Source: Pelomyxa schiedti (lineage: Eukaryota > Protista > Evosea). From it: a stretch of DNA of 63,380 nt. Positions 38,592 through 56,867 of this stretch are shown here, in pieces. The stretch's first letter is position 1; each line of letters begins with the position of its first letter. Under the pieces are notes generated by a model. The model was given only the letters and a program-made list of their open reading frames with translations. It searched no databases and was not told where the DNA came from. Where the stretch lies: NCBI GenBank assembly GCA_020536535.1, contig JAHLWZ010000358.1, positions 1-63,380 of the forward strand, written 5' to 3'. The translations under genes and the position numbers were made by a program.

Positions 38592-39845
38592 TTAAACACT
38601 ATTCAAGCTCCTCGGTTCCTTAAGTAGTGTCTTCTCTGATTGGATTTTGGGGGCAACGACCGGCTTCCACAAGACTATCAATATCAGCACGGCTGGAAGA
38701 AGATCCAAGAATGGTTGGAACAAAAGTTTGCTAATTGTGGTGCCCACTGCGTTATCAGAGAGAACAAACATGTCAATAATAATCATCCCGGACCGCAGTA
38801 GAAATACAACAAAAAACAGAATTGCTGGGAAAGTTACCTGTGGTTAAAGGAATTAATACCCAGAACAGGAAGAAGGTATGAAGAACGGGGTACCCGTTTT
38901 AGGACTTGACTTGTGCGCTCCGATTTCAACACTGAATGATTTTTCACATGCACAAACACTACAACCCCAAAAATTCCAAATGCTTTAAAGAGTTAGGTTT
39001 TGATTGTTTCTTTTAAGGTCAATAAAGGAAACGCACCCATGCCAGTGACAAATGCGAGTGAGGCAGCATATATAGCCTCTATTTCATGGAATAGGTCCAT
39101 GGCTTCCACGCCCATCAGGATCAACAGTACTATCCAAACAAGATATACAAGGACATTGACTGCTGAGTAAACCTAAGAGATAGTTACCCAATTCAAGAAG
39201 TTTGCACCATTTACCATCAAAGTTGCCCGTTTCACTCGTGGTACTGTAGCAGAAGGAATTAACAATCCAACCCTAGGTGGCTTAGATATCTACAACCCGT
39301 AGTGGTTCAGGATACCAAAAGCAAAACATGAGACTATAGGCAGAAAAAAATAGGTAGCCCGGCAAACCCTAGGGAAGTTTAGAATAATGGCGGGGAAAAA
39401 AAATAAATGGAAGAAAAATACCCCTAGAAAAGTTTGCAGTAAAGTCTGTTTATTCAGGGAAGTCTCAAGATATCCATCCCAGAATATGCTCATCTCAAGA
39501 GCACGTGCTTCATAATAGCATTAAGCAGGTGGAGTTTTGATTGAAAAAGATGACAAAGGAGGAAGGCAGTGGCGCACACAAAAGCGGAAAAGGGATGAGT
39601 ATCAATGTTCCCTTCCTCACAGAGAACCCCGAGTAGGGCTCTCGCACTAAAATCCAAATCACCCGCGCGGCTGAGATGCCAAACGCAATGTAGAAACAAA
39701 CAAGCTCTGCCCAGAACACGTCGTACATCCAATCAGCAACTTGCGTGGTGCTTGAAGACATCGATGACGACCACGACGCGAGGGAAGGCGAAAGCGAAAA
39801 CGACGCGGACGAAGACTCGTTGAGCCACAATGACGACGACGCCAT
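38592..39845 (-). CDS. Multi-pass (probably 7TM) membrane protein, THH1/TOM1/GPR137-like
   Basis: Ser-rich N-terminus then successive hydrophobic helices (FYIAFGISAARVIWIL, VCRATYFFL, NVLVYLVWIVLLIL, FFVVFLLRSG, FLDLLPAVLILIVLWK). Confidence 0.6.
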
Positions 39846-40207
39846 TGTGGGAGAAGACCAACTCGATAATTGGCCGAAAACCAAAGAGACAGCGTTCCGG
39901 TCTGTTGATTATTTTATTATGCCGTTGTGGAAGGACTATCCTATCTGTGGAACTGTCTGGATCCGTGCTCGACCCATGTTGTCTGAAAGGTCTGGGAGAC
40001 CGAAATCTCCAGTCACGAGACTCAGGGAACAGACAACAAAGAATTGATAATTCTTAATTATGTCAGATCTCCAGTCATGGGAGTGCCAATAAAAGGGGGA
40101 GGCCAGAGCTGGACATCATGGAGATGCAAAAAACAAACAGACTGCCAAGGTGGCTCTGAACATTGGACACACCAAAAATGTAGCTTTGAGGATTGAATTC
40201 CACCACA

Positions 40208-40481
40208 TTGCTGCCTCATCTATCACAGGATAGACTCTGGGTCCATTTCAAACATCACACTAGTTGTACCACTGTGTCTCTCTCCATGCCCTACCTAACC
40301 TAGAACACCCTACTAAAAGCTTCCCCTACTGCTTTTAGTAGTGTTTTGTGACAGATAGGGCATAGAGAGAGGCACAGTGCTGAACAGGCCATCTGGCCTT
40401 CCATATAAATGCATGTGTGGTACAACTAGTGTGACATTTGAAATTGACTCAAAGTCTATCCTGTGATAGATGAGGCAACAA
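40208..40481. ncRNA. Long fold-back hairpin A (candidate hairpin-RNA/pre-miRNA or foldback element)
   Basis: 40208-40272 pairs with 40417-40481 (65 positions, 59 Watson-Crick); inner 40270-40320 pairs with 40331-40379; 10-nt loop. The structure is directly visible, the RNA function is inferred. Confidence 0.55.
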
Positions 40482-40631
40482 CATATTGTATTTTTAATGT
40501 TTGGCAGTACAGACATCTGTGCACAGAGTTGTCAGGGACCTTTTTGACTGTTTCATTGAAAAAGGTCCCTGACAGCTCTGTGTGCAGGTGTCTGTACTTC
40601 TGAACATCAAAAATACAATATGTTGTACCTC
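40472..40631 (+). ncRNA. Long fold-back hairpin B (candidate pre-miRNA)
   Basis: 40506-40545 pairs with 40559-40598 with no mismatch if G-U is allowed (36 Watson-Crick, 4 G-U); 13-nt loop; stem extends to about 40472/40631. Confidence 0.6.
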
Positions 40632-40790
40632 TATTAAATGATGAATCACAATCACAACACTGTTTTTGATGCTTAAATCAGACTGAAAGGAGTTTAGGCA
40701 CCCATTGAATACAACACACGGAAAGAAGTATTGACAAAGAGAGGAGGATTGGGCATCTTCTAGTTTTCGTCGAACGAACTTCTTGGTGTG

Positions 40791-43700
40791 ATGGCGGGAG
40801 CCAACACATGTCGAGGCCGGAAGTACGTGCTGTGTGGCGTCTCTGTCGATTTTCCGTACGAGGCTTATCCCTGCCAACTCGTGTACATGGAAAAAGTTAT
40901 TCAAGCGCTCAACAATGTGTGTGCCAACTGATCTTTTTTTTTTTTTTTTTTCTTCCTCTTTTTTTCTCTTTTTTTCGCCGTCCATTTTTGTTGTTGTGCG
41001 TTGGTGTTAATCTTGTTGCGTATCCTCAACCTCTTTCGATTATCAGAGGCAAAATGCACTCTTAGAGAGTCCCACTGGCACAGGCAAGACTCTTTGCCTG
41101 CTGTGCTCTGCTCTCTCTTGGCAAAGAGAACAGTTGTTGGTCAAGTTGCAGTACAACTGGGTGGATTCTCAGGTCATGAAAGCTGTTCAGGAGGACGAGG
41201 AAGAAGACGAAGAAAAGGTGGCTGCTGACACTGCTTCTGCTAAATCTGTTGCTACTGCCTTGGTCAAGTCTGTTGTGGATAATAGTTCTTGTAAGAACTC
41301 AAGCGAGGAGGTCGGCCATACCACTGTTGTTCCCTCCTCAGGCAGTGTCGGGCTTAAGAACTCAATGGGAGATAGCGGCAATGATGATAGCACCTTGGTG
41401 TTTGATGTGTTCCATGATGATGTTTGCCTGGATACACACGTTGACAGCGTTCAATCTTCCAGCTCAGATCACACTCAGCAAAGTGAAGAAACGGAAGAAG
41501 AAAAACCACCAAGACCTCCTAAGATCATTTATACATCAAGAACCCACTCCCAACTCACACAAGTCATAAAGGAATTCAGAAGATCAAGTTACCAGTAGGT
41601 TTTTATTTCCCTACGTCATACAAATGAACAAACAACCAACCACAGAGTGTCAAATGGCCTTCTTGGAGCACGGTCCCAGCTTTGTTTAGAACCAGCAGTG
41701 CGTAAATTACCTGCCACAGCTCAAAACCAGGCTTGCAATGCCCGCACATCTCGCAACGAGTGTAAACTTCGCAACAATTTATCGGGTGGAGTAGCAACCA
41801 AATTAACAGTTCTTTCACTGATAGAGCTATAGATAAACAAGTTGAACACCCCAAAGATTTTTTGGAACTGCTCCGGGCAACTGTGGATGACAAAGTGGCC
41901 TGGGATATTGGTGATTCCAGTACACTTTTTCCCCCAGTTATTCTAACTGGTTCACCCAAGAGGATCTCGAAAAAGTTGGAAGAGAGAACAATATTTGCCC
42001 CTATTACCTTAGTAGAGAGACAATTCAAAAAGCAGACGTTCTGTTCATGCCATACAATTACTTGATCGACCCAAAAATACGGTGAGTAAAATCTCAGCTT
42101 AGTCAGTGTTCCTGTTTCACAAAGTTTCAGTGCCACACAAGCAATAGATTGGACTGATTCTGTGGTTATATTTGACGAAGCCCACAATTTGGTACTTACA
42201 TTAGATTCCTAAAAAACAAAAGGCTAACGACTTCACAGGATTCTGTGTGCCAGGATGCTATTTCCGTGGAACTAACTCCAGAAGACTTGAATGGTTGCTT
42301 GCGGGAACTCGATGACTGTATTGAAGTACTGAAACAGAATACTATCCCAACTGAAAACAACCCTCCTCTTGTCGATTTTTTTCATCTCAAAGGTAGAAAT
42401 TTTATTTTATTACTACCCAATGTTCATTATCCCTCAGATATTATTGCCGCCATTCAGACTCAAATTAGTGCATTGTACACTGCTGTCCGTTCTGGTGCCC
42501 CTCTGGATGTCAATCCTCGACCAACAATCTCTACTGATGGTGACAATTATCGATGTGCGACCTTTGTTGGAAGTTACTTCCGCAACCTTCTTGAAAAAAG
42601 TGGAATTGCTGGTGATCAAGGCGACACAATTGTTTCCATTCTGTCTACCGCAGTGCAGAGCTTGCAAGATGGTACCATCCCATGGGAGGAGAATCAAAAC
42701 TTTAGACTGGCATAATAACTGGACACTATATAGCAGGATCACAGCATGCACATTTAGACCACTTCTCTGAGGCACTTAAGCTATCATTCTTTGTTGAACC
42801 CAAAGATGCAGACAGATACCTCAAGGTTCATTCACCATATTCTATTTTTAAAATTGAATCTTAGACACTAGTAGGTTCATATCTTCACTCAGAAAAGTCA
42901 GTGGTGCCTAGGATATTGGTGTTTTAGTCCTGCTCTCGCACTCCGTTCCCTACTTGGAACTGGAATTAGATGCATGTAGGTATTATCTACTTGACCTATT
43001 GACAATAAGCAACTTCTCTACCAGGATTTTGACTAGTGGTACATTATCTCCACTTGACGCGCTAGAGCAAGAGCTTGGAGTACCGTTTCCTATCAAATTA
43101 GAGAACTCTCATGTGGTCCCACTCGAAAACGTATGGGGTTGTATTGTTTCTTCTGGTAAGTAAAACGGTTTCAATAATATGCCTCTTTTTACACAAACTT
43201 AGGTACAAGAAAGATAGTCCCTCTTAACTCAGGTTACCAAAATCGCTCCTCCGCAGCATATCAAATGGAAGTTGGGGACATAATAGGTATTGGAGTGGAC
43301 CCCTTGTCCTCTCATTCTCAAGTTATCCCAGCTGGTGTCTCGCGGGTAACACCTGGTGGAGTTCTTGTATTTTTTCCGTCATATTATATGCTTACATCTT
43401 GCATTACTCTTTGGAGCCAAGAAGTAACCTTCTTACCCATATAAATGAATACTGATTTGAAAAAGCGCAATGGTGCTTGCATAATGAATTTAATTAAACA
43501 GTACAAGACTGTTGTCACAGAGGTGGGTCTACTTGGCCCTAATTTTACCAGCTCACATGACCTATGTAGCCACGAAATATGACCCAGTTCAATGCCGTAA
43601 TACAACAATATAATGATGAGGTGGCTCAACCAACAAACCGCGGTGCCATTTTTCTAGCTGTTGCGCGAGGCAAGGTGTTTACACCCCACCTCCTACAGGA

Positions 43701-52342: not shown

Positions 52343-53323
52343 GCAACAAACTACAACATTCCCAGTAGTTACACCATAACAAAATACAAAGATCACAACC
52401 ACAGCAGTACCACCAGAAAAAACCACACAAAAATAAAGAGGAAGAATTGAAGTATTTCTTTCCAAAACTTGTTCTTTTGTTTCCACTCTCATTCCATTTC
52501 GGCATGTTGCTTCCCCAACTCTTAGAAAGGGAAATCAAATGGCTGCATAAAATAATCAACAGACGGAACGCTGTTGATTACCTGGGTCTCTTTTCTGCTG
52601 AGAGAGAATCCAAGAGAATAGAATTCATGTCCAATACAATCAGCAACCCAAAATGTGCACTTAAAATCCACACCACTCACACTCTTGCTGCCTTTTGGTC
52701 CGCCGGTCTTCTTGCTTTTGCTTGGGGTTCTCTAGTGATTATATTAGTCAATGGAATGGATTAATATACGCCATAGTAGAGTGCTGGCTGGCAGCCCGAA
52801 AGACGCCCACAGCAGGACTCCAAAGTACGGGGAGAGCCGAGCCTGAGAAGGCTCCCCCTGAGGTGTGACACCCTCCAAAACCAAACCTCAACGACCACCC
52901 CACCAGCAGCCCTCTCCCACGAGAGAGGCTTGGCAAAATGGCTGAGAGGCAGGGCTTTGGCAATGCTGCATCAATCCGATCACGATCACGATCACTTCGG
53001 GAATCAACGGTGAGCAGCACTCCGTTTCATGTGCCAGAGTACTAAAAGCGAGCACGAGCCACCAGCAAACACCCAGCAGGCACCCAACACAGCTTAAGAC
53101 AACACGTAGATCGAGCAGCAAAACAACGTCACACGTCACTTGCGGAAAACCTAACCGCCAGTCACCGGCACTAACCCGCGCTTTTTTTTCCTGTTCTTTG
53201 GATCTCAAAAAAGATTCATGAAGGTGTTTCATTACCTCCTGAAAGGTTCATTCGAGGTGGGCCCTGGAAACAACTTGGTCTGGAAGTTCCGAGGGGAGAC
53301 AAAAAAAAAATCAGGAACACTGT

Positions 53324-56300
53324 TCAGATTGGAAAGAGAATAGGTTTTTTTTTTGTTCTTATATACGTCGAACCCACACTTAATGCGCACTGTTCTAAGG
53401 AGCACATGCAACTTACAGTGTTATTACGATAGAAACGAACGGCACCAGAAAAAGGAGTTGTGAACTGTTGTCTGATCGGGGTGGTTGTTGAAGCAGGGGC
53501 GGAGGCAGAGGTGGTGATGAGGAACCAGGTACCACACACTGTATTCTGCCACTGTGCGCTCGGCTACATGTGGCTTCTTGTCATGTGAGGATGATGATGA
53601 ACCCGGCGATGAGGGCGAGCTGCTGGTGCCCAGCGTGGGCGTGGTCGCCTGGTGGTTGCTGCCGCCGCTGCTGTGGGGAGTCGCCGCGGGCCGCAGAGTC
53701 GGCGGTGGCGGGGGTGAGGAGGTGCGAAGCGGCGGAGGTGGGATTCCCTCTCCCTCTAGGAAGGAAAGTACATCGGGAGTATCTGTAATATCTGTTTGGG
53801 ATTCGAATTAGTGAACCAAGAGGGCTTGGTGACAATGGCACTTACAATTGGCCTGGTGCTTCGCTGGGTCGGAGTTATCTCTTGAAGAACCCTCCTTTGA
53901 TCTGTGGTGACCTTTGGGTTTTTTCTCTTTCCGATGATGTCTTCTATTGGCAGCATATTGCATAGCAACTATAAGGGCCTCTGCAGTAAAAGCGGAAATT
54001 CTCCTCAAATCCTCTGAAATAGCTTTCTTTCTCTCCGGTCCCGAATTTTTGATGCCATGAAAGTAATTTTTGGCAACGTGCACAGTGTTGAGAAATTTCC
54101 AGTGGGTGTGCAGAAATCTAGGATACTGACCAAGAACATGCGTTCTATCTTTTCCTCTTGTCACCTCACACATTCCCAATAGAGCCCCTATCACAAACCG
54201 TATCTCAGATTCCTCGTCTTTAGTCCAGGAGAATTCAAAATTTGAGGGAGGTGCACTGCATAAGACTTAGAGAATACAGGAGATGGCAACCCAAAACACC
54301 AAGGAGCAGCATTTGTACACACTGGGTGAACAGTCAACAGATGTCCAATCCTCGCATCAGGAAAGCTGTGATTCTCCGAAACCCCATCAGCAAATCCACC
54401 TTGTCTTCCTCCGCCACCTTGAACAGCAATATTTGCGTGGCCTCATCACCAACACCTCCTCCTTCTCCTCGTCCCACGGAGACTGCTGCGTCGTTGAGCG
54501 TGTGGATTTTGTCCCTTTCGCCCTTCCTCTCCCGAAACTGCAACCCCCTCCCCGCACCGTCAAGGAGAACAAAAATAAAAGAACTGGCACGCACACTCAC
54601 CTTGCTTCGTGGGACAATTTAGAGCATAATGCCCGAGGCACCACATGAGTAGCACGCGTTCGTGTTGGACATGTTCACCCGGAAACAAAAAAAAACCGTT
54701 GAAATGCCCTAGTGTCGGCGGTCTGGTGGTTTTTTTATTCAGCCAAATCACACCACTTGGTGACAACTGCTGGTTGCAATTCTTTTTGAGAGGATTCAGT
54801 ACAAAGAGCTCTGATAGGTAATGTGGCAGCATCAACAAAGAACCTGGCAAGAAAAGGCTCCTGCCAAAGCACTGATAATGCACGAGAAAATTAAGAAGAA
54901 GCTGGGTAGTGGCAAGAGGGCATCAACAGTGAAATGATCTATCTTAGTCCTTCAAGATTCCTTTGACTTTCTCTGCCCTTTGAATCATGCTCTTAAGGTG
55001 GTTAAGACAATTGAAAGATGTGTACTGCTTTACCGGAAACATCGTCTTGAGATTGGATTTGGTTACTTGGGTATTTCTAGAGAACGGAATGTTTAAAAGC
55101 TGCAAGATAGTGAGAGTTGTAGAATCGTCTAGTCCCCACCATTCTAGAGCCAAGGCACACTTCGGGACCCATACACTCTCTTTTTTTTTTTTTTTTTTTG
55201 GTTGTTAAGAGAAAGTAGATAGAGATTTTTACTTCGACATCCAGATTCTAGCGAGTGTGTACAATCGGCTAGGGTGCAATCCAGAGTATCGCGTTTCTGT
55301 ATTGTAAAATGAATAAACTTCCAGTCAGTTAATTCCCTAACAATGAGAGGGTTTTATTTCCAGTAGGGTATCGGAGTTCAAACCATGGTCTTTCTTCCTG
55401 AGGTTGCTTGCCTTTGCAGTACCACAGCACTGCCAATATGTCGCACCAAATAATAGCTTCCATCGTACTATCAAAATAACTTCGAACAGCTACACTGTTC
55501 AATAATGTTTTGAACACTGTTGTGTACGACAGAGATAGTCCTGCAAGTTTGTTGAGTTGATAGTCTTTGTGTCACAATGCAGGTACTCGATGAAGAAATT
55601 TCTTGTGTTAAGCACATATTTATTGCTTCGATATATGAAGATAGTGCAAACGGATCATGCTGTGCCATATTCACCAATTCTTCAACGTAATCTTGTTTTT
55701 TGCTTGGATCTTTATTATAAATCTCGGCCAATAAACTGGTTCACAGGAATACTGTAAACAAAAGTGCAATGAAAAGAAAGAAGACCTGATAGGATAAGGA
55801 TCTGGCGTGCCTCGTGCACATTTTAGAAGCCTATCTTTCACAAACTTGGGAGTTGTTCCAACCATGATTGATGCCTTTCATTTTAAGCTTCTGTAGGTTT
55901 TTTAAGGAATACCATACCTCATGTAAAAAGTATAAATGCAAGTCACTAAAAAGTGACTCTTTTTGCCAAACTTCCTCCACAACTTTCACTTGCTCTTTGT
56001 CATGTGAGCCCCCTTTCCTTGGGTAATGGACAACGTTATAAACAGAAGAAGAAGAAGAAGATAAGGATGACCTGAGGTTTACTGCTATTGCCTTCACTGG
56101 TTGCAGAAAATATGTTTTAAATGGCTGCAGTGGATATACATCATCCACAACTCGCAGCAGTTTCCCTGGGTCGTTGGCGTACCGCTCCTTGACCAACTTG
56201 ATAGCAGCGTCGATAGCATCCTCCGGCAATTTCGGCTTTGTTGGCATCACATCAGTAGCAACTGCGGCCGCTGTTGTTGCAGTTGCAGTTGCATTTTCGC

Positions 56301-56565: not shown

Positions 56566-56867
56566 TTTTTCGGGTTGTCCAATGTGTGAGGCTAATAGAT
56601 CGCGTTCCCAACTTGGTTCCCAGCGGGGCCTCCGAGCTGGCTCACATCAGACAACTCTCTCGTGTCACACAACATACCGCACAAGGGACCCTGGCACTCC
56701 CGAAGATCCGAATGAATGGACACTGGCCTCCTGACCGGTTGGCGAATTTCTCATTTGGCTGAATAAAAAAAACACCAGACCGCAATCCTGAGCGATGATA
56801 AGGAAAATGACAACGTTCCGGTCTGTTGATTATTTTATTCAGCCATTTACAGTTTCTTCTCAGAACA

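Follow-up and report, generated by a model that had tools for sequence, protein, structure and literature searches.

Two long hairpins occupy a divergent intergenic spacer

The window analyzed here is a 63,380-nt contig of Pelomyxa schiedti (JAHLWZ010000358.1), in which two genes diverge from a spacer of 942 nt, measured from the inferred start of the minus-strand gene at 39850 to the helicase ATG at 40793. The first exon of the minus-strand neighbor was inferred at 39513-39850 by six-frame translation, from the ATG at 39850 and the hydrophobic segments that follow it; exon pieces of this putative 7TM gene gave no match in Pfam. On the plus strand, sequence reading places the first exon of an RTEL1/XPD-family helicase at 40793-40918, beginning with its ATG at 40793, and exon 2 begins near 41044; DEAD_2 and DEAD matches on exon 2 were weak and sub-threshold. 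The first intron of the helicase gene contains a T-rich tract of ∼45 nt (40924-40968). A metagenome scan with RTEL1 exon 2 returned one distant relative with the same N-terminus (L035), which has a different upstream gene and no hairpin upstream. The two hairpins described below, A and B, fill 424 of the 942 nt, in agreement with the first-pass annotation, which had estimated that they take up ∼45% of a ∼950-bp divergent spacer.

Between the start of the minus-strand gene and hairpin A lies a truncated solo end of a mini-transposon (39885-39918, plus strand), whose word depth is ∼100-400x that of its surroundings. The complete element is 90 bp long and consists of two 30-nt terminal inverted repeats; a full copy is present at 56756-56845, where each end immediately precedes the ATG of one of two divergent genes. 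Motif matches identified further ends at 52546-52571 (minus strand) and 54720-54745. The window has five copies of the element, and 190 kb from other contigs have none. Genome-wide, 265 + 272 = 537 ends were counted, often paired at 65-nt spacing, as compared with 0 in a reversed-pattern control. A general role of the motif at 39885-39918 as a terminator or core promoter was considered and rejected, since those 190 kb lack it and it belongs to the terminus of a 90-bp inverted-repeat element with 537 ends. It is not evidence for a transcription unit.

Architecture and stability of the hairpins

Hairpin A (40208-40481) is a 274-nt fold-back with ∼111 paired positions, as delineated by a repeat finder and by RNA folding. 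Its outer arms (40208-40272 and 40417-40481) are 65 nt each and 91% complementary. The inner part (40270-40379) is more diverged and closes on an apical loop of ∼10 nt; within it the repeat finder detected a nested pair of 39 nt with 79% complementarity (40270-40308 and 40341-40379) and an innermost pair of 17 nt with 88% complementarity (40304-40320 and 40331-40347). On its right side alone, A carries a further 37 nt (40380-40416), which form a side branch in the folds and make the junction of inner and outer arms asymmetric.

Hairpin B (40478-40626) is a near-perfect fold-back of 149 nt that forms ∼69 bp. The repeat finder gave arms of 73 nt (40478-40550 and 40554-40626) that are 86% complementary and separated by a gap of only 3 nt. 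Mismatches between paired arms affect 9-14% of positions in the two hairpins and are mostly transitions. B can be extended to 40472-40631 by pairs added across a small internal loop (2x1), beyond which 40472-40475 pairs with 40628-40631 to add four pairs; in this form B enters the right arm of A by 10 nt.

Folding of 40200-40640 as RNA yielded exactly two rods, A and B, with a free energy of -265.8 kcal/mol. Shuffled versions of the same segment averaged -111 +/- 6 kcal/mol (z = -24.3), and 0/100 folded as well. Folded alone, hairpin A gave -162.5 kcal/mol on the plus strand and -172.7 on the minus strand, and hairpin B gave -103.2 kcal/mol on the plus strand and -87.5 on the minus strand; the extended form of B reached -108.5. 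In a window-wide survey for strongly matching inverted repeats with arms of at least 30 nt, only A, B, and the 90-bp mini-element at 56756-56845 were recovered. Nothing above 8 nt is common to the sequences of A and B. The repeat finder, the folding, and the limit of 8 nt in common together bear out the earlier description of two unrelated long hairpins placed side by side.

Neither structure resembles a catalogued RNA family at the level required by Rfam, where the best match, to mir-5014, scored 60 bits and so fell short of the gathering score of 101. Sub-threshold matches fell on several unrelated miRNA models and on both strands, which argues that they are generic matches to a hairpin. A 163-aa antisense ORF spans hairpin B; an exact-protein look-up with its product returned no match, in a collection from which records of this genome may have been left out. 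Small ORFs inside the CpG-free block that surrounds the hairpins (see below) had no match in Pfam.

Both stems form at the same time

The first-pass annotation had noted that the segment 40472-40481 can pair in two ways and had concluded that the bases of the two stems compete, as in an RNA switch. The two-way pairing is present, in that the A and B repeats have four bases in common (40478-40481) and the extension of B adds four base pairs. The competition did not hold up. A and B folded jointly gave -265.1 kcal/mol, as compared with -265.7 for the sum of the two, a cost of 0.6 kcal/mol, and the contested bases account for ∼5 of 265 kcal/mol. Both stems can thus form at once, there are no mutually exclusive folds of comparable energy, and the locus does not have the properties of a switch.

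G-U wobbles had also been taken to point weakly to the minus strand for A and to the plus strand for B. The raw counts lie in these directions: the outer arms of A contain 1 G-U pair on the plus strand and 4 on the minus strand, and hairpin B contains 6 on the plus strand and 1 on the minus strand. Neither bias is significant, however (for B, two-sided p = 0.125). At three adjacent double mismatches (40253/54, 40502/03, and 40520/21) both arms carry TG or CA, and these positions are decayed CpG sites. When a CpG that was paired in the ancestral stem is deaminated independently in each arm, TG or CA is left in both, and the resulting double wobble always appears on one strand. Part of the wobble pattern is thus mutational, and selection for pairing is not required to explain it.

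The hairpins lie in a sharply bounded block without CpG

No CpG occurs in 40016-40719, a block of 703 nt that comprises A and B, ∼190 nt to their left, and 93 nt to their right. From base composition 30.5 CpG would be expected, and ∼20 at the window mean observed/expected ratio (o/e) of 0.67. TG and CA have o/e values of 1.64 and 1.50 in the block, as compared with 1.20 and 1.22 in the window. The block edges are sharp, as the adjacent 700-nt bins contain 37 and 24 CpG. No other CpG-free run in the window is as long, the runner-up measuring 368 nt, and only one is longer in a sample of ∼255 kb of the genome in which the density of long hairpins and their association with CpG loss were evaluated.

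The 255-kb sample contains four long inverted repeats: A, B, and one in each of two other contigs, L020 and L021. The repeat at L020:2800-3009 (G000:C6) is a 210-nt nested fold-back with arms that are 92-100% complementary, and an 85% copy of it is located at G000:C107:1120-1341. It also lies within a CpG-free run, of 578 nt, and so represents a second locus of the type found at 40208-40631. The repeat at L021:8672-8891 (G000:C7, 360 nt from the contig end) has 55-nt arms of 98% complementarity, sits in GC-rich, coding-like sequence, and is matched over its left part by C7:4593-4770 at 98%. It probably reflects a chimera formed during amplification or assembly, or else a segmental duplication of recent date.

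Additional CpG-free blocks with excess TG/CA and sharp bounds were found at L032:6492-7565, L034:8064-8721, L017:7195-7708, L017:1454-1963, L018:6620-7035, and L020:2554-3132. They measure 400-1070 nt, with 12-49 CpG expected, in a genome whose mean CpG o/e is 0.64. The largest of the sample, in L032, is a low-copy repeat, and it is the sole block for which copy number was tested. The block at 40016-40719 is probably the footprint of long-term cytosine methylation, a footprint being indirect evidence because DNA amplified by MDA retains no methylation signal. The blocks as a group suggest a mosaic of cytosine methylation that is aimed at repeats. The loss of CpG could equally mark an old extinct transposon, or be a general trait of long spacers in this genome.

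C5 DNA methyltransferase domains are present at no fewer than four loci (at least those at L038:1273-1914, which corresponds to G000:C829, and on C902, C151, and C1048). In L038 a weak chromodomain match (E = 0.004, below the cut-off) is located just before position 58 of the methylase profile, a placement of chromodomain before methylase that, as far as this weak match goes, is like that of plant chromomethylases. The only enzyme of this class that we know of in Entamoeba is of the Dnmt2 type, and beside this relative such a complement of C5 methyltransferases would be unexpected.

Both hairpins are single copy and identical in four sequencing runs

Whole-genome BLAST-type searches (52,367,397 bases, 5337 contigs) using A, B, or the two joined as query (the joined query at E <= 10) returned only their own locus. 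As positive controls, the same search recovered the 85% copy of the L020 hairpin on C107, the duplicate of the L021 repeat, and 83% copies of the L032 repeat. Because copies of other elements at 80-85% identity were found, the sensitivity is adequate and A and B are single copy. Membership of both hairpins in repeat families had been named beforehand as the result that would speak against a small-RNA locus; the search was run, and each proved to be single copy genome-wide.

The boundaries of the hairpins were likewise free of the marks of insertion. No target-site duplication was found around A, B, or A+B, the flanks having by reading at most a 2-nt CA in common. Terminal inverted or direct repeats bounding the hairpin pair or the CpG-free block were also not detected, the alignments scoring 17 and 16 where shuffles averaged 16.4. 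Two defining features of MITEs and fold-back transposons, a multi-copy family and a target-site duplication, are therefore lacking.

The P. schiedti assembly (52.4 Mb, 5337 scaffolds) combines Nanopore reads with the MDA products of seven single cells, and the transcriptomes are Smart-seq2 poly(A) libraries only (PMC8887013). Four runs from one sample were compared, using DNA-like contigs with depths of ∼47, 5, 18, and 4. The contigs of all four runs (4/4) carry the hairpins (40208-40626) without differences, and the sole difference in the stretch, at position 40053 in run X2, is outside the hairpins. Run X2 also has 13 differing positions and two indels within the helicase gene (40985-42500, depth ∼5-8), together with an opposite-strand joint, 40985/42032. 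These differences in the helicase gene may reflect alleles that vary from cell to cell, or else errors and chimeras introduced by amplification.

A proposed origin by two local inverted duplications

We propose that local inverted duplication took place twice in succession in this long noncoding divergent spacer and gave rise to A and B, a reading to which we assign a probability of about one half. Each hairpin would have formed when replication or repair copied DNA by fold-back or template switching. In the proposed order A would have arisen first, and the tract copied in the second event would have taken in the outermost 10 nt of A, with the result that the stems abut and have bases in common. 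The stable first hairpin may itself have been the barrier at which copying stopped. The arms would afterwards have drifted apart by 9-14%, mostly through transitions, and the locus would then have become cytosine-methylated, every CpG in the 703-nt block being converted to TG or CA. Were the block transcribed, the hairpins would be Dicer substrates, and the resulting siRNAs could recruit methylation.

Template switching can create whole hairpins in a single event (PMC10710096). A and B have the characteristics of such local inverted duplications: they are single copy, their spacers are short, and they carry no transposon hallmarks. The 3-nt gap between the arms of B and the asymmetric center of A are further evidence for inverted duplication. 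In addition, the reach of the B repeat 10 nt into the arm of A fits a copying tract that entered the neighboring hairpin, and not two independent insertions. A selected small-RNA function is not needed to account for any of the observations; hairpins that originated in this way could still have gained a function afterwards.

The locus as a possible source of small RNAs

The principal alternative is that the spacer contains a candidate hairpin-RNA cluster, in which one transcript, or one per strand, would carry A and B and be diced to siRNAs or miRNA-like RNAs that would regulate the two neighbors or genes elsewhere. Such a cluster is itself compatible with an origin by inverted duplication. 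A hairpin-RNA locus is possible, given that the hairpins are single copy, with no repeat family, and that the genome contains RNAi machinery; on balance we consider it unlikely. The stems are extremely stable, and two of them adjoin even though long inverted repeats are rare (4 in 255 kb).

The machinery includes loci for Piwi-domain proteins, of which there are at least four, Dicer-like enzymes, and RdRP. RNase III is represented at two loci, one of which, L011 (G000:C866:3704-6907, minus strand), has a Dicer-like layout in which a 483-aa open frame containing a weak PAZ match is followed by two RNase III domain pieces on the same strand. One RdRP gene has an open frame of 1280 codons, and there is a second RdRP locus. 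Dicer-like and Argonaute genes, as called for in a miRNA system, are thus present. For the related Entamoeba, by comparison, a single-RNase III protein only has been described (PMC4521922), together with an active pathway of Argonaute-bound 27-nt small RNAs (PMC2582682).

The locus had been judged especially noteworthy as lying in a lineage without established miRNAs. This applies to the Archamoebae, which are outside the sampling of Edelbroek et al., 2024 (PMC11014262), but not to the Amoebozoa, since that study reported stringent miRNAs in Dictyostelia, Physarum, and Acanthamoeba that are mostly intergenic, young, and lineage-specific, with precursors mostly of 75-125 nt. B, at 149 nt, is close to this range. 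Measured as stems, however, A (274 nt, ∼111 bp) and B (∼69 bp, near-perfect) are much longer than canonical miRNA stems. The three sequence arguments that had been offered for an RNA function, namely stem competition, wobble bias, and a miRNA-free lineage, do not hold.

Transcription signals and targets likewise give little encouragement. No CCCAYAA box is located beside the hairpins: a pattern search of the spacer region listed none, and by eye there is one minus-strand match at the 7TM start codon, ∼350 nt from A. Runs of T5 within both arms of B argue against transcription by Pol III. In neither the window nor the 255-kb sample did complementarity to a possible target exceed 14 nt, and no target was found genome-wide at E <= 10, where matches of 20-25 nt may be missed. 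By this genome search, the extended complementarity to a target gene that characterizes hpRNA and endo-siRNA loci is absent. The nonsignificant wobble bias weighs in the same direction, and the total loss of CpG suggests a silenced, methylated locus over an active gene.

A further proposal is that the block is transcribed, and that RNAs diced from these candidate hairpins by the Dicer-like/Argonaute/RdRP machinery would direct methylation of their own locus, or would act as the first hairpin-derived regulatory small RNAs of the Archamoebae. We regard this as doubtful. If true, the self-methylation option would amount to a loop resembling RNA-directed DNA methylation outside plants, and it would explain the sharply bounded CpG-free block.

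Less probable readings: transposon relics, cis-acting palindromes, and artefacts

A and B might instead be what remains of one or two ancient insertions of fold-back or MITE-type elements whose families are extinct and whose silencing by methylation led to the loss of CpG. An active family of inverted-repeat elements, the 90-bp element with 537 ends, has left a truncated end in the same spacer, the one CpG-free block tested for copy number consists of repeat DNA, and near-complete palindromy is frequent in MITEs. Against this, a search that detects 80-85% copies of other elements found no second copy of either hairpin, a target-site duplication flanks neither A nor B nor the pair, and the CpG-free block has no terminal repeats. 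Moreover, the B repeat takes in 10 nt of the arm of A, which independent insertions would not do. We therefore consider an origin from transposons rather improbable.

Still less likelihood attaches to a role in cis at the DNA level, in which the palindromes would form a cruciform, separate the two genes as a boundary or insulator, bind a dimeric factor, or serve as a replication origin. The position of the hairpins in the middle of a divergent spacer would suit such a role, and one report on yeast (PMC13100816) describes the expansion of promoter inverted repeats by template switching. Arms of 65-73 nt, however, are far longer than factor sites, the block appears methylated and decayed rather than conserved, and no comparable element is present in the other spacers of the window.

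An MDA inverted chimera or a hybrid-assembly error is very unlikely: MDA products of seven single cells did go into the assembly alongside Nanopore reads, inversion is typical of MDA chimeras, run X2 has an opposite-strand joint nearby (40985/42032), and the L021 repeat resembles such a chimera or a duplication, but a chimera would be an exact copy whereas the arms here are 86-91% complementary and differ at 9-14% of positions, mostly by transitions, the hairpins lie within a 63-kb contig, and the contigs of four runs with very different depths carry 40208-40626 identically.

Discussion

Viewed by itself, the locus is ordinary, in that inverted duplications arise in junk DNA. Its value lies in the combination of a clean pair of single-copy long hairpins with a full RNAi toolkit in a member of the Archamoebae, which provides a concrete place for a small-RNA search. 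A CpG-free, TG/CA-rich block coincides with the fold-backs both here and at the second hairpin locus in L020. This coincidence suggests that a free-living relative of Entamoeba methylates selected DNA, possibly DNA that is self-complementary or repeated.

Decay of CpG driven by methylation takes several forms, among them the depletion seen in vertebrates, RIP and MIP in fungi, and RNA-directed DNA methylation of inverted repeats in plants. The P. schiedti block is similar in lacking CpG, in its excess of TG and CA, in its sharp limits on self-complementary DNA, and in its occurrence in a genome with C5 methyltransferase and RNAi genes; it differs in that methylation at 40016-40719 is deduced from the sequence alone. 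What is new here is the sharp-edged 703-nt CpG-free block around both hairpins.

The hairpins can be compared with four further kinds of element. MITEs and fold-back elements, including the 90-bp element of this genome, are also hairpin-forming, noncoding spacer DNA that is probably methylated; A and B differ in having no family and no target-site duplication, whereas the 90-bp family has 537 ends. Drosophila hpRNA endo-siRNA loci and young plant MIRNA genes formed by inverted duplication derive from their target genes and match them. Like A and B they are long, near-perfect, single-copy inverted repeats that would give a long duplex for Dicer, but there a matching gene exists, and for A and B none was found in the P. 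schiedti genome. Amoebozoan miRNA genes (Edelbroek et al., 2024; PMC11014262) are similar in being intergenic, lineage-specific hairpins in genomes with Dicer-like and Argonaute genes; the P. schiedti stems are two to three times longer, nearly perfect, more like siRNA hairpins, and known from DNA alone.

The closest parallel to the proposed inverted duplications is provided by the hairpins that arise by template switching (Monttinen, Frilander and Loytynoja, 2023; PMC10710096). In the P. schiedti case the event is deduced with no ancestral sequence for comparison, and the primate events are mostly short, on the scale of a miRNA stem, whereas here the arms are 65-73 nt (∼110 bp in A) and two hairpins abut. 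In other respects the two correspond: template-switch hairpins are single copy, have a short spacer or none, lack a target-site duplication and a family, and arise, as here, in noncoding DNA, where they are raw material for hairpin RNAs.
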